Shown: piece after piece, positions 16,127-30,200 of the stretch
How positions within the stretch are numbered: the first letter of the stretch is position 1
Layout of the letters: each line of letters starts with the position of its first letter
Assembly (NCBI GenBank): GCA_977016875.1
Contig: CDRNST010000180.1
Span: 1,736,001-1,800,000 of the forward strand
Direction: 5' to 3'
Length of the DNA: 64,000 nucleotides
Source of the DNA: Pavona decussata
Lineage: Eukaryota
Position numbers and translations under genes: made by a program
Notes under the pieces: model-generated
The model's input: the letters and a program-made list of their open reading frames with translations, nothing else
Database searches by the model: none
What the model was told of the DNA's origin: nothing

Positions 16127-17732
16127 AGCCCCAATCACCTTAATCACTAAACCTCAGTTTTTTCAAACCAAAACAGTTCATAAACTTTGAAGCCACATAC
16201 TGTATTTACTGAAAAAATAAAACAACAACAACACTCCTATCAATTTAAAGGTCCGCCTCAACTGATCATATGTCGGAACTGCCAAAAACGACATTAATTT
16301 CCTGGAGCAGTACCGGGAATTTATTTACTTAGGTAATTCAGATTTATCAGCTGATTTATAAACGAAAAAACACGGCCTTCTTGTCAGTGCAGTAGCCCTT
16401 TCACGGGAGGAGGGTAATACCATCCCCCTCCCCCTAAAAAAGACTGCGTTGGAGGCTACTCATAGGTATTTGCTACTGTAAGGGAAAAATAAATTTTCAA
16501 AGCCACACATGTCAACCCAAGTGAATCGCCTAACTCGCCATCAGTCTCCCAGCAGCACAGTGGTTAGAGCATCTTTTCGGTGTACGAAGGTCCTGGATTC
16601 AATTCCCGAGGATGACTGCGGAGTTTTTCTTTCAGTATCCCATCCATGTGACATGTGACATGCTAAATACTACAGCTTTGAAAAGTATTGTGTTAACTAT
16701 TTGACTTGTTATGTTGGAGATTACCTAGCAATCTCGCGGTGCGTCGAAAAATCGCAGCAAGATTTTACCAACCTATAAGGTATGCTGTATGTGTTTACTC
16801 CAAACGTTCCATGAATCCGCGATGTACACAAGAGCTCCTGCTGTGTTAGTTTAGAAATCCACCACATTTGCCGCAAAAAGAAGCCAAAATAGCCTGAGGA
16901 AGGCTTGATACTCACTGCAGGGGCATAACAACTTGGCTGAAGCGAGTGTTGGACTAATGTGATGTGATCATGACCATACTTATAGAACAAAAACCGTTGG
17001 TGTTAAGGGAAGACTTTCTCCGAAGTGAAGCCAGCTTCTTGTTTGTTATCTTCTACAACTTGTGATACTAAGATCCTAATTGCAAAAATGCAATATCATT
17101 GCAAAGCCCTCGTAAACAAATGTTGCGTATCATTTAATTTCGTGAATTTGAAGTTGAACAATCAGAAACTGTCGAGGTTGTGCGAGTGAGTCAAGGCTGG
17201 CTACATCCCCAATCCTTCTAGACAAGAATGTGAGATAGTAGTCCTGAGAGCCTTCAGTTTAATGACGACGAAATCCCTGGTGCAAGTCAGAACTATTGAA
17301 GAAACTGAAAAATTCCGGTGAAAGACTCGAAACACAATCGAACACTAACCCAAACAACTGAGCAACTGATCCTACTCCAAAATGAAACTCATTTAACCTG
17401 CCGATACGTATTAACAAAAAGAGTGTTAGTCAAACCTAGTCTAAAAGTACTGAATGTTCAAATGAGCTCAGTCATGTACGAATACACGTGCTTGGTGAGT
17501 TATACAACTAGAAAAGTTCACGTGCAGTGAGATCCTTTTGACATGCAGAGATCGGATAACCCCAGCAGAGAAAATACAAACGGTCGTCGGGTCTTTTTAA
17601 ACAAAATTAATGGCTTTGTGTTGAGTCAAAAGACTTATACCAGCGTAACGGCGCGTGGCTACAATCCTAAATATGTTGATATATTGCGGCAGCACTCGAT
17701 AAACACACATTTAACGCAGAGTCGTCTCCGAT

Positions 17733-18054
17733 ATGGACGTCACACCTATTGGGAAGGTAATACCACAACCCAAGAAGAGACCTCGGCGACGAGGACCCCG
17801 CCTAACGGGTGTGAGCAAGCAGAGAAGAGTAGCTAACGCAAGGGAAAAGAGGCGAATGGAAACTTTGAATATGAACATTCAAATACTGCGACACATGATC
17901 CCTCTTCCACCGCAAGACAGGGAACCTTCTAAAACTGAAGTGATATGGCTGGCTGTGGATTACATTACGGAGCTAAACAAAATGTTGGAATCAGCTAACT
18001 TCCTTGAGAGCCTTGACAGTCTAAAAGGAAGTCCACTTCATTTTAATTTTGAGG
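17733..18054 (+). CDS. bHLH gene 2, Paraxis-related paralogue, exon 1
   Basis: RRGPRLTGVSKQRRVANAREKRRMETLNMNIQILRHMIPLPPQDREPSKTEVIWLAVDYITEL. Donor G|GTAAGT at 18055 (phase 1). Confidence 0.9.
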
Positions 18055-18886
18055 GTAAGTATTTTTGGGTGACGTAATTACTTCAAGAAATTGGGACATG
18101 TGTGCGATTTCGTAGATGCGCCCAGGCATCAATGAAATGGCTAGCAAAATTGTATTTAGGTACAGCTCTTACTGCAAGATTTATGAATTTACATTCCTCA
18201 GGATTTTTTTTTTTTTTTTTGAGATTTTGAAGCTACACTGAGGCCACCAGAATAATATTTTGCAGGCAGAATTAATGGGCGGTTGTGAAAAGCTGTCACC
18301 AATTCCTGAGCTACAAAGCTGTTCTGCGTCGACCGTACATAAAAGTTAAGTCGCCACTGAAGAAAAAGAAACCTGACTGGGAAATGAAGCTGAACATTAC
18401 GAATAAACAGTTTTTACTTATATCTCTGGCGGTGTCCAACCCACAGGCTAGGCTGCCGTGTAGTGTGCAAGTTTGAGTGAACTAAAGTTCTACGATACTT
18501 TGCCAAACAAAATCTTTCGATTCTTTAACTTGGCCTTCGTGGGAAGTAGAATCAGCTGAGCTATGAAATGTTTGCCAAGACAACGTAACCCCAGATAGTC
18601 GCAGCTGTGTCAAGCGAATTCCACTTTTTTGGACTCGTGCTTTTCTTTTTTTTTTCCCTTTCGAAAGGAAACAAAACACGTCTTGGACGCAAATCACAAC
18701 ATAAACAAGCTTGTCATTGGCATTCGACTAGCAATTAATAAAACCTCGAATCCATTTTTTTTGGTTGATAAAACTTAACCGGCACTGTCTAAAAGACAGC
18801 CACCTGTACTGTTGTTGATAACCAAATTTAGTTGCCCCTTGTTGCTTATGATTGATGATCTGACAACCTCATTCTTTTTCTTTCAG

Positions 18887-26870: not shown

Positions 26871-27225
26871 CTTCAAAATTAAAAAGTGGACTGTCTTCTA
26901 GACTGTCAAGGCTATCAAGAGAGTCCACGTCGACCATTTCCAGCTCAGCTTGCCATGCATCAGCTGATTCCAACATTTTGTTTAGCTCCGTAATGTAATC
27001 CACAGCCAGCCATATCACTTCAGTTTTAGAAGGTTCCCTGTCTTGCGGTGGAAGAGGGATCATGTGTCGCAGTATTTGGATGTTCATATTCAAAATTTCC
27101 ACTCGCCTCCTTTCCCTTGCGTTAGCTACTCTTCTCTGCTTGCTCACACCCGTTAGGCGGGGTCCTCGTCGCCGAGGTCTCTTCTTGGGTTGTGGTATTA
27201 CCTTCCCAATAGGTGTGACGTCCAT
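26871..27225 (-). CDS. bHLH gene 4, near-identical inverted paralogue of gene 2, exon 1
   Basis: The first 88 codons differ from gene 2 at only 4 nt. Donor G|GTAAGT at 26870 (phase 1). Confidence 0.92.
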
Positions 27226-30200
27226 ATCGGAGACGACTCTACGTTAAATGTGTGTTTATCGAGTGCTGCCGCAATATATCAACATATTTAGGATTGTGGC
27301 CACGCGCCGTTACGCTGGTATGAGTCTTTTGACTCGACACAAAGCCGTTAATTTTGCTTAAAAGACCGGACGTCCGTTTGAATTTTCTCTCCTACTGCTA
27401 TATGACCTAATTTTTCAACACCGAATGTTTTGAAGGATTCAGGAAGTTGCATTATACCCAACATTAACTTTCCTTAAGGCTTTGCAATTGACACCCACCT
27501 TATTCTTACAAGTTGTAAACAATAAAAAATAAGAAGATGATTTCACTTCGGAGATGGTCTTCCCTTGACAAGAAACGTTTTCGTCGAATTTTGCTTTATT
27601 ACTGTAGCTTTCCATGTGCACCATCGCGCCATAAAAATGATCCAATGGCTTCAGCTGAAGTTGTCATCCCCACCTAGCCTGTTTTGGGTTTGGGTCGCAG
27701 AGTATCAAGCCTTCCTCAGGCTATTTTGGCTTCTTTGCGGCAAATGCGGTGGATTACTAAACTAACACAGCAGGCGTTCTTTTGTAAACCGCGGATTAAT
27801 GGAACGTTTCGATACACAGTAAACATATACTACATACCGTATGGGTTGGTAAGATCTTGCATTTTTCAACGCACTGCGAGATCGATTGCTGAATGTGATC
27901 TCCAACCTAACAAGTCAAATAGTTAATACAATACTTTTTAGTACAGTGGCAAAAAATACTTCCAAGTTAATCTTTATTGACCGAGTGTTTTTAAGTTGTA
28001 ATGTCTAAATGCTGACATCTTTCATTGACCTGGCTGACATCTTGGCCACAAACATCAACCAATAACATCTTTTTTAAGTGTCTCGCCGGAAAATGTCTCA
28101 GCGTAGACAAGATAATGTTGCGCCCCATCGGCCACGCTTCTAACTATTTTTTAGTTCCTTTTTTATTTTCTTTCTGTAGCACAAATGACATGATTAAAGA
28201 ACTGATCTTCCGACTGTTGCTTGGCTTGTGGGCGTGAAGACGTTATCAAGTAGCAATTAATTTGTCTTGAAGTGTAACTTGCAATCATTTGCGAACCAGA
28301 GTTAGACCATAATCTTGCACAGTATAGTAGCAATAAACGTTTGATTGGTTTAGAAAAACATGGTATCTACAAAGTCCAAGCAAGTTATTATTAGCTGACA
28401 CGACGACCTTCAAATTCTTGTAAAACACGTTTGGGGGCAGTTAATCAACGTGGCGTAATTGCCTCGCAGTACAAAACGTTATTTAATTAATGAGATAAGC
28501 TTTCGAACAAGGCTTAAGTAAATAGAAATGTTATGTTCTTCGTGATAATGATAAGATGTTCAGACAACTAAAAAGATCTGATGTTCAGTGTTCGATATAA
28601 GCATTCTGATAGAGTTAGAGTCAAAGTGAGGGGATGCTATATTGCAACTATACCACAGACATACGTTCCAATTGTTTCAAATATAGCAACATGAAATTGC
28701 GAAAAAAAACGTCAATACAACACAGCATGTGATGACAACACCTGTTTAATAACATTCCCCCGTGAATGTTAAATGAAAACAGCAAACAACTGCTGCTACA
28801 TCAAAACACGATTTAATGAATAGGAAAGAAAATTTTGTTTGAAAACGACCAAAAGGCCGTGCAATTTTTCAAACATTTTCTGAGCAAGGTGGTAACAATT
28901 TTTCCTAGCTATAAAAGGGTGACTTCGAAACAAATTACCAAAACTTGTTTACCAATGTTTAGGAATTCGTTTGATACCATTATTGTACATAGTATGCACT
29001 GAGAAACAGTGGAAATAGTGATCGATCAAGTTATAACTGAAGGGAAGTACAAGAAAACCCGTTGTGAGCCACTTTAAATTAAGGCAAGCTAGAGAGGTTT
29101 TCTCTTGATTAACGGTAAAAACAGCATAAACAGTATGGACCCAAATGTGACGACGGGTTTTTCCTGCTCGAGCGCACAGGAGAGACAATTTAGACTTCAA
29201 CGGCGACTTGACAATGTATCGGGGGGAATTAGCTTGAGAGCACTCGCTCGCTAGAACGACAGAGCTCGTCACAACTCTTAGATACAGGGATCTAGCCAAC
29301 TAAAACTCGACGAACAGCAGAGAATAGACAATCTTCTTCACTCCAGCATAGGGTTATTCAGTGCGTTATTGACCAACATAACCAAGGGCGCAAACTGGAC
29401 GTTATCTTGAATGTAACCACGATGTAACCGATTTACAATTGTACGCCTAGTGCTTATATAGCTACAGGGTACAAAGAGGTAAAGTACTTTCTTTTGTTTC
29501 ATGGCGTGCATGTTGTAATAGCACGATGTCACAACAGAAAGCGTCACTTAGGAATATGTTATTTTCACGTGCGCTTAATTGTTAAAGGTTCCTTATTAGG
29601 AGAGTACTTTTCGGACTACACCCTAAACAAACAATGTTGAACTTTGATTGCGGCAAACTGAACGTACACCAAAAGAATTGCTGAGTCGTAAGATTACAGC
29701 ACAAAGGTTAAGGACTCGCGTGATCAAGCAAAGTACATGAGCCACGTGCAATGCACCTTTACACGTGAACAGGCCAGATGTTGAACTAGAATAAATTAAA
29801 ATAAGGTCTCTTTGTTTTAAAACCCTATGCTGATTTGAAATGAAAGCGAATGATTATAAGTGAAAAGTACATAAGATAAAAAGCTATATATGAAGTAGTA
29901 AAAGCGAAAACAAGTAAAAATATCGAGCGATGACACACAAATCACTACGGTTGTTAATACAACCGAGAATGTTCACTTCTTGTGTCCAGATACGAGTTGA
30001 TTAAATATGCTATTCAAAATCTCAAAGCTATTGTAGCTACCTGATTATGTATTCTATTCCAAATTCAAAGCTTTTGAAATGCGCTTGCTAAACGTATTAA
30101 AGTGAAACGCGAAATCTCTCGTAACGCAAATTCTCTTTCCAGTTACTTGTTTAATTGATGAGTTGGCTTTGTAAATTTACGTTTTTAGTCCCCCACTAAA

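Follow-up and report, generated by a model that had tools for sequence, protein, structure and literature searches.

How can two neighbouring genes be almost identical over their proximal upstream and DNA-binding parts while the DNA on either side of these parts differs at about one position in five? The question is raised by genes 2 and 4, two small genes for basic helix-loop-helix (bHLH) proteins that lie in inverted orientation in a 64,000-nt window, by which we mean the whole stretch analysed here (positions 1,736,001 to 1,800,000 of contig CDRNST010000180.1, our contig C180), taken from the 602-Mb assembly of the stony coral Pavona decussata (GCA_977016875.1). The initial annotation of the window had suggested an older duplication followed by recent conversion between the arms, limited to the promoter and the bHLH region. 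Our analysis supports this explanation and modifies it in three respects: the conversion would be recurrent rather than a single event, part of the upstream identity is due to constraint, and the upstream part may be untranslated leader instead of promoter. We consider it very probable that an older inverted duplication was followed by recurrent gene conversion of a block of about 400 nt, comprising the proximal upstream region, the N-terminus and the whole bHLH domain. The features on which the argument turns are as follows.

16681..19314, + strand: arm A, in which the derived copy, gene 2, is located; identity to arm B about 79-84% beyond the core block
25680..27938, - strand: arm B, carrying gene 4, the parental copy
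17595..17996, + strand: homogenised block in arm A; includes 138 nt of 5' flank and codons 1-88, which encode the N-terminus and whole bHLH
26962..27363, - strand: homogenised block in arm B, partner of 17595..17996
17178..17539, no strand: dispersed-repeat (transposable element) insertion of 362 nt, arm A only
26926..26961, - strand: 36-nt in-frame segment, 12 codons just behind helix 2, which gene 4 has and gene 2 lacks; marks the block's right-hand edge

The arms are inverted relative to each other, and blastn places their full extent at 16681-19314 and 27938-25680. They were also found by a repeat search, which describes them as inverted arms with a 402-nt core at 98% identity and remaining segments that are 77-89% alike. 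The distance of about 6.7 kb given earlier needs correction, the spacer being about 6.4 kb long and containing gene 3. The 362-nt insertion in arm A ends 194 nt upstream of the gene 2 ATG, about 55 nt to the left of the block, and has no counterpart in arm B in the alignment of the arms; copies that are 71-80% alike occur on five other contigs.

Global alignment of the arms gives 10 mismatches in the 402 nt of the block (2.5%) against 340 in 1624 positions (20.9%), with many indels, outside it. By region, mismatches amount to 20.0% (distal 5' region), 14.5% (remainder of exon 1), 18.7% (intron) and 28.8% (3' part), in agreement with the by-eye impression that the end of exon 1, the intron and the 3' region had diverged. 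The contrast between the block and the rest of the arms is highly significant (Fisher 4e-24). A best-segment scan gave a likelihood ratio of 53.8, a value reached in 0 of 300 permutations (maximum 15.5), and the longest perfect run of 130 nt compares with a maximum of 73 nt in 2000 permutations. Perfect runs within the block extend over 17718-17847 and 17880-17996. Uniform divergence, which the initial annotation had named as speaking against conversion, is thus not what the alignment of the arms shows.

The finer observations that first drew attention to the locus were reproduced exactly. The first 264 coding nucleotides (17733-17996) contain four differences, at 17848 (K/R), 17856 (M/V), 17863 (T/I) and 17879, of which only the last is synonymous. 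The 5' flank has three differences in the last 100 nt before the ATG and six in the 138 nt that belong to the block. Identity breaks off right after position 17996, where arm B has 36 extra nucleotides (26926-26961). All differences within the block are transitions (10:0), against a transition to transversion count of 187:148 outside it (P 0.003), and they therefore look young.

If conversion acts on the block, copies within a genome should resemble each other there and only there. This was examined with members of a protein cluster, five of which have the gene 2 tail, consisting of the 12-residue deletion and an extra His, and many the gene 4 tail. Three pairs carry the evidence.

P0013 (gene-2-type) and P0032 (gene-4-type), longest contig 691,648: shared private A3
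P0030 (gene-2-type) and P0037 (gene-4-type), longest contig 64,125: shared private S17; identical over residues 1-88
P0027 (gene-2-type) and P0036 (gene-4-type), Logan contigs: shared private R12-T13-Q14

Each of A3, S17 and R12-T13-Q14 is found in both paralogue types of one source and in no other sequence; R7 occurs in P0032 (gene-4-type) and in P0029 (gene-2-type). The tails, distinguished by the 12-residue indel, remain paralogue-specific throughout and group by paralogue. The clustering within species that had been predicted for the exon block is therefore seen at the protein level. Different shared variants in different genomes require several independent conversion events, and on these protein sequences conversion appears to have been recurrent in several lineages rather than to have happened once.

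Read data from a related species (run X12) point in the same direction. The block (17585-17959) is present there as one contig with a depth of 230, compared to 105-128 in the flanking single-copy contigs, a ratio of 2.0. This contig has arm-B-type letters at six of the ten sites where the window's copies differ (17636, 17660, 17848, 17856, 17863 and 17879). The arm A flanks of the related species, which include the repeat insertion (X12 record 3) and the gene 2 tail, show about 7.4% divergence from the window (189 of 2555 letters in six pieces). As the arms differ from each other by about 20%, the duplication would be roughly three times older than the species split. The two copies of the related species nevertheless appear identical over 375 nt, and the probability of finding no synonymous difference between them without exchange after the split is 0.017. 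A metatranscriptome (X18) has the same pattern, with a block depth of 27 against 12-16 in the flanks. In X18 the depth is even over the intron and the intergenic DNA of arm A, apart from 139 nt of the intron (18172-18310) that are missing; this coverage indicates that the reads come from a related coral, as genomic DNA or as unspliced RNA.

The reading that survives best beside recurrent conversion is that conversion happened once, or a part was duplicated a second time, before the species of this group split, and that slow change without further exchange followed. It would be enough for the pattern within the window itself, where the single synonymous difference is only marginally below the A-B species-divergence expectation (P 0.048). 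It does not explain why the private variants differ from genome to genome, which calls for separate events after these genomes diverged, nor why the copies of the related species appear identical at twice the single-copy depth, with the low probability just given. We regard it as quite unlikely.

A second possibility is that the bHLH domain and the core promoter are so strongly constrained that neither copy has changed, with no exchange at all. Residues 21-88 are indeed almost invariant in proteins of many coral genera, and very few differences separate arm B from the related species' block. The synonymous sites provide the decisive comparison. Against seven gene-4-type orthologues from other coral genera, recovered by a metagenome scan (L009-L015), gene 4 has pS values of 0.63-0.77 and pN values of 0.035-0.05 over the same 88 codons. 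The synonymous sites of these codons are free to change and are saturated between genera, so selection does not protect them within the block. Between gene 2 and gene 4, pS is 0.016 (1 difference in 62.5 synonymous sites) and pN is 0.015. From the divergence of the intron 11.7 synonymous differences are expected, and the probability of seeing at most one is 4e-5. Selection cannot account for this synonymous identity, as the initial annotation had argued. The amino-acid variants that are private to single genomes and present in both of their paralogues are likewise something that constraint cannot yield.

The upstream part of the block is a mixed case. Over 17610-17732, upstream of genes 2 and 4, there is a conserved non-coding element, which is also found in other-genus contigs with saturated synonymous sites; it has a TATA-like box at 17678-17685 and a core containing CGCGTGGC. 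Invariant in all seven other-genus sequences are 57 of the 138 upstream columns. Of the 81 columns with variation between genera, 4 are different in the two paralogues, where 15 differences are expected (P 3e-4). Constraint accounts for part of the upstream identity and for none of the synonymous identity, and conversion is still needed for the 81 free upstream positions. The 138 nt may represent a promoter or a 5' untranslated region (5'UTR). With the synonymous sites and the free upstream positions both pointing to exchange, purifying selection alone is a very improbable explanation.

A further explanation, to which we give hardly any credence, is an artefact of assembly, polishing or collapse in which reads of both copies were mixed in the consensus: the block is longer than the unique anchor of a short read, and Logan contigs break at the block ends, so that short-read graphs cannot separate the copies, but the copies in the window still differ at 10 positions and hence are uncollapsed, the arms are the only two copies in the 602-Mb assembly, with no third copy or haplotig, and other assemblies and a second species have the same pattern. 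Each copy is also supported separately. In another sample of the window's species (X3), a 675-nt contig (record 17; 17016-17690) runs from the repeat found only in arm A into the block with 0 differences, and X12 combines single-copy flanks with a double-depth block. The combination of K39 and M42 that is specific to gene 2 occurs again in P0013 and in X5, an RNA run from another study with the same species label as the window, and K39 alone occurs in P0029. The bridging contig and the double depth also answer the concern, raised at the outset, that the exon identity might stem from polishing or collapse.

Some contig data are less conclusive. The only block contig in X3, and likewise in X5, has C at the synonymous site 17930, where both copies in the window have T. 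This suggests, as weak evidence, a concerted difference between individuals, with the caveat that contigs drop minor variants and that the X3 depth is not cleanly twofold. The X3 block contig has a depth of 110 against 28 and 42 for the two arms; as this is no simple doubling, no firm conclusion was drawn from it. An X5 contig combines the arm-B-type 5' flank and arm-B-type letters at 17863 and 17879 with K39 and M42. It was not used as a mosaic allele, since it could be a de Bruijn chimera.

Several considerations weigh against recurrent conversion or limit its reach. The part of the upstream identity that is plain constraint (57 of the 138 columns) lends it no support. No footprint of GC-biased conversion was found, the GC content at third codon positions (GC3) not being raised in the converted block; values of 0.47-0.48 compare to 0.48-0.55 in the other-genus orthologues, and GC-biased conversion was discarded as a contributor. 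The cross-genome evidence is at the level of proteins only. The assignment of paired proteins to one contig was presumed from equal 'longest contig' figures, and the Logan pair P0027/P0036 may come from different runs. De Bruijn contigs may be chimeric across an identical block and drop minor variants, and short-read polishing of the other long-read assemblies could homogenise near-identical paralogues.

We still favour recurrent conversion. What was found corresponds to concerted evolution: divergence is low in the tract, it is low also at unconstrained sites, variants are shared within genomes at the protein level, and both copies are real. This kind of event is well known and belongs to ordinary gene-family evolution.

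The next question is which copy is the parent and in which order the changes took place. In the other coral genera sampled only the gene-4-type tail was found, with no gene-2-type tail among them. In another coral genus (L012 and L015) an orthologue of gene 3 is located about 2.7 kb downstream of the gene 4 orthologue on the same strand, as in the window (L012:4066-7073 and L015:2464-5495). The restriction to gene-4-type tails and the conserved order of genes 4 and 3 identify arm B as parental and gene 2 as its inverted daughter, and the linkage in another genus implies that this part of the cluster predates the genera. Gene-2-type proteins are present only in one 90% cluster of five sequences, all of which have the 36-nt deletion. 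Within the limits of the database, the duplication looks confined to a narrow group of species. Six of the ten differences in the block are absent from the block contig of the related species, and for all three amino-acid changes gene 2 has the derived state. At 17660 and 17717, however, arm A agrees with the other genera and the derived state is in arm B. The differences within the block are young in the window's species.

In the scheme that we propose, an inverted duplication would have copied gene 4 along with flanking DNA, about 1 kb upstream and 1.3 kb downstream, and placed the copy, gene 2, beyond gene 3. Divergence of the arms by about 20% would have followed, during which arm A would have gained the 362-nt repeat 194 nt upstream of the ATG and gene 2 would have lost 36 nt in frame just behind helix 2. 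The block between these two heterologies, the repeat insertion and the 36-nt indel, would have been kept alike by repeated copying. We infer the direction of transfer and two further steps: break repair templated by the inverted copy 9.4 kb away would be the molecular route, and the flanking indels would stop the conversion tracts.

The differences that remain in the coding part of the block are confined to one place, which raises the question of why conversion has spared it.

17848..17879, + strand: divergence patch of 32 nt with R39K, V42M, I44T and one synonymous change, at the junction of basic region and helix 1 of gene 2

On either side of the patch the copies match perfectly, for 130 and 117 nt. 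Among the nine paralogues in the window and the gene-4-type orthologues seen, only gene 2 has K39 and M42. Residues 39, 42 and 44 are invariant in gene-4-type orthologues, and 39 and 42 also in the window's paralogues other than gene 2. Position 39 is the Arg that follows Glu in the E-R-x-R motif; the solved TAL1, TWIST1 and NEUROD1 chains have Arg there as well, and NEUROD1 has Met at position 42. All three replacements are on the gene 2 side, which has 10.5 non-synonymous differences from L009 compared to 7.0 for gene 4. Three of the four coding differences are non-synonymous, which is unlikely given an omega of about 0.03 for the family (P 0.003). That the four coding differences fall within 32 of 264 nt has a probability of 0.006, but some group of four among the ten block differences would fall within 32 nt by chance with a probability of 0.20. 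The gene-2-type proteins form a series: P0029 has K39, P0013 has K39 and M42, the window and P0028 have K39, M42 and T44, and the sister group P0030 and P0027 has none of these and keeps the gene 4 state. P0013 shares A3, 36 codons from the patch, with its gene-4 partner.

Micro-conversion from another paralogue was considered as the source of the patch and rejected. At codon 44 gene 3 also has ACT, but it lacks the synonymous state of codon 49, and no paralogue has K39 or M42. From the sequences the patch may be a divergence island maintained by selection under conversion, as in the Teshima-Innan model, a possibility that we hold only tentatively. Chance accumulation under relaxed constraint since the last conversion fits equally. 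With the same reserve, gene 2 could be escaping concerted evolution by neofunctionalisation, through selected changes in the basic region in the order R39K, V42M and I44T, with conversion resetting both sides of the patch; we find this conceivable and rather doubtful. If it is true, the patch, the 12-residue deletion and the repeat insertion in the promoter would make gene 2 a coral-specific bHLH protein whose DNA binding or use of partners is altered and which might modulate the parental gene 4. If the patch is selected, it would be a compact test case for the divergence of transcription-factor paralogues under conversion pressure.

What kind of genes are involved can be judged from their domains, their structure and their neighbours. 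Nine small bHLH genes were found in the window by tblastn.

13168-13413, - strand: Paraxis-like gene, by tblastn similarity
start at 17733, + strand: gene 2, tblastn
24125..24427, - strand: gene 3, a single-copy bHLH paralogue in the spacer, tblastn and Pfam
start at 27225, - strand: gene 4, tblastn
between 34.5 and 58.4 kb: five further bHLH genes, tblastn

The HLH profile PF00010 of Pfam scores 51.6 bits for gene 2, 47.6 for gene 4 and 50 for gene 3, with a cut-off of 20.7. The three genes belong to the bHLH family by this profile and by their basic motif, in which gene 2 has E-K-x-R instead of E-R-x-R, and they align to the TAL1, TWIST1 and NEUROD1 chains. The exon structure of genes 2 and 4 is as follows.

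17733..18054, + strand: exon 1 of gene 2, 107 codons plus 1 nt; HLH at residues 30-81 (Pfam PF00010, E 8e-14); donor GT at 18055
18055..18886, + strand: intron of gene 2, GT..AG; skipped by X5 RNA contig record 27, X5 depth 0 across the intron
18887..18960, + strand: coding part of exon 2 of gene 2, junction Gly, 23 codons and stop; in-frame translation from 18889
26871..27225, - strand: exon 1 of gene 4, 118 codons plus 1 nt; donor gtaagt at 26870, homologous to the confirmed gene 2 donor
26014..26036, - strand: predicted coding part of exon 2 of gene 4, junction Asp, CAPISL and stop, from the homologous acceptor

Gene 2 is transcribed and spliced. An X5 contig joins 18054 to 18888 with one letter in between, and this joint is the intron 18055-18886 with a variant at the first base of exon 2. 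In the same run the exons and the 3' end are covered, with zero depth over the intron. The translation of exon 2 of gene 2 was made separately, and its junction codon was assigned by eye. Gene 4 would be spliced at the homologous donor and acceptor, which would add seven residues. An X5 RNA contig with arm-B-type letters extends 305 nt past the left end of the block (arm B, 26962-27363 and upstream); it may represent gene 4 with a long 5'UTR or an upstream start.

Smaller observations concern the surroundings of the arms. A second, weaker peak of identity between the arms is found at 16807-16906 and 27707-27804, about 900 nt upstream of the ATG, with 92% over 100 nt; it may be a conserved regulatory piece or the remnant of an old conversion. 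Near the inner part of arm A, at 18999-19041, there is a short repeat of very high copy number, with a summed contig depth of 1e4-1e5 in all four runs and loose ends on both sides. Just outside arm A, at 16500-16620, a tRNA-like or SINE-like (short interspersed element) piece attracts many contigs, RNA contigs included. The idea that arm A has a tRNA or SINE at its outer end was rejected, since ARAGORN calls no tRNA at 16500-16620. In the spacer, 20444-21400 on the - strand contains broken open reading frames that are probably transposon debris; one matches a hAT dimerisation domain below the threshold (E 0.003; 17.7 bits, cut-off 21.4), and nothing else was found in them.

For the identity of the gene family the closest comparison is with a sea anemone. 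In Nematostella the genes nem7, nem24 and nem64, the 'Cni-PaTH' clade, are described as clustered with paraxis and twist and as specifying muscle cell types (PMC10060217). The window resembles this arrangement in having small class-A bHLH genes, nine in total, in a cluster that starts with a Paraxis-like gene, and a Nematostella protein (P0018) is among the protein matches with 70% identity over the bHLH. The likeness rests on tblastn similarity and on linkage to the Paraxis-like gene at 13168-13413. Gene 4 is predicted to be a small anthozoan bHLH gene related to Paraxis, Twist and Hand, kept in every coral genus sampled. Gene conversion is not mentioned in the passages of that source that were read. 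The family concerned, on that account, specifies muscle cell types in sea anemones.

Divergence islands that are kept by selection within converting paralogues are known from exon 5 of the red and green opsins (Teshima and Innan 2008, reviewed in PMC3924837), and peaks of divergence within converting paralogues from GOT1 of Tigriopus (PMC3728101). The patch in gene 2 is similar in that three non-synonymous changes and one synonymous change lie within 32 nt between identical runs of 130 and 117 nt. It differs in comprising only four changes and in that the sister group's gene-2-type proteins, P0030 and P0027, lack it; the changes may have accumulated by chance since the last conversion.

The best precedent for the block itself is interlocus (ectopic) gene conversion with concerted evolution of young paralogues, which has been surveyed in Drosophila, Caenorhabditis and mammals (PMC2588116, PMC3966223, PMC2720389; review PMC3924837). 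As in those systems, a few hundred bases have stayed alike within a duplication that is older and has diverged, there is little synonymous divergence, the paralogues have polymorphisms in common, and the copies are close together on one chromosome. A consequence is that gene trees and duplication dates for the cluster that are based on the bHLH domain alone would be wrong, the block suggesting a split of about 2% and the flanks one of about 20%. The present case differs from the surveyed ones in that recurrence is deduced from protein pairs and contig depth instead of phased DNA. It also differs in its setting, a stony-coral host, a lineage-specific bHLH gene and a tract enclosed by a repeat insertion and a 36-nt indel, and it would illustrate, in a natural and well-delimited case, how a cnidarian developmental regulator undergoes concerted evolution, with exchange recurring in several related corals.

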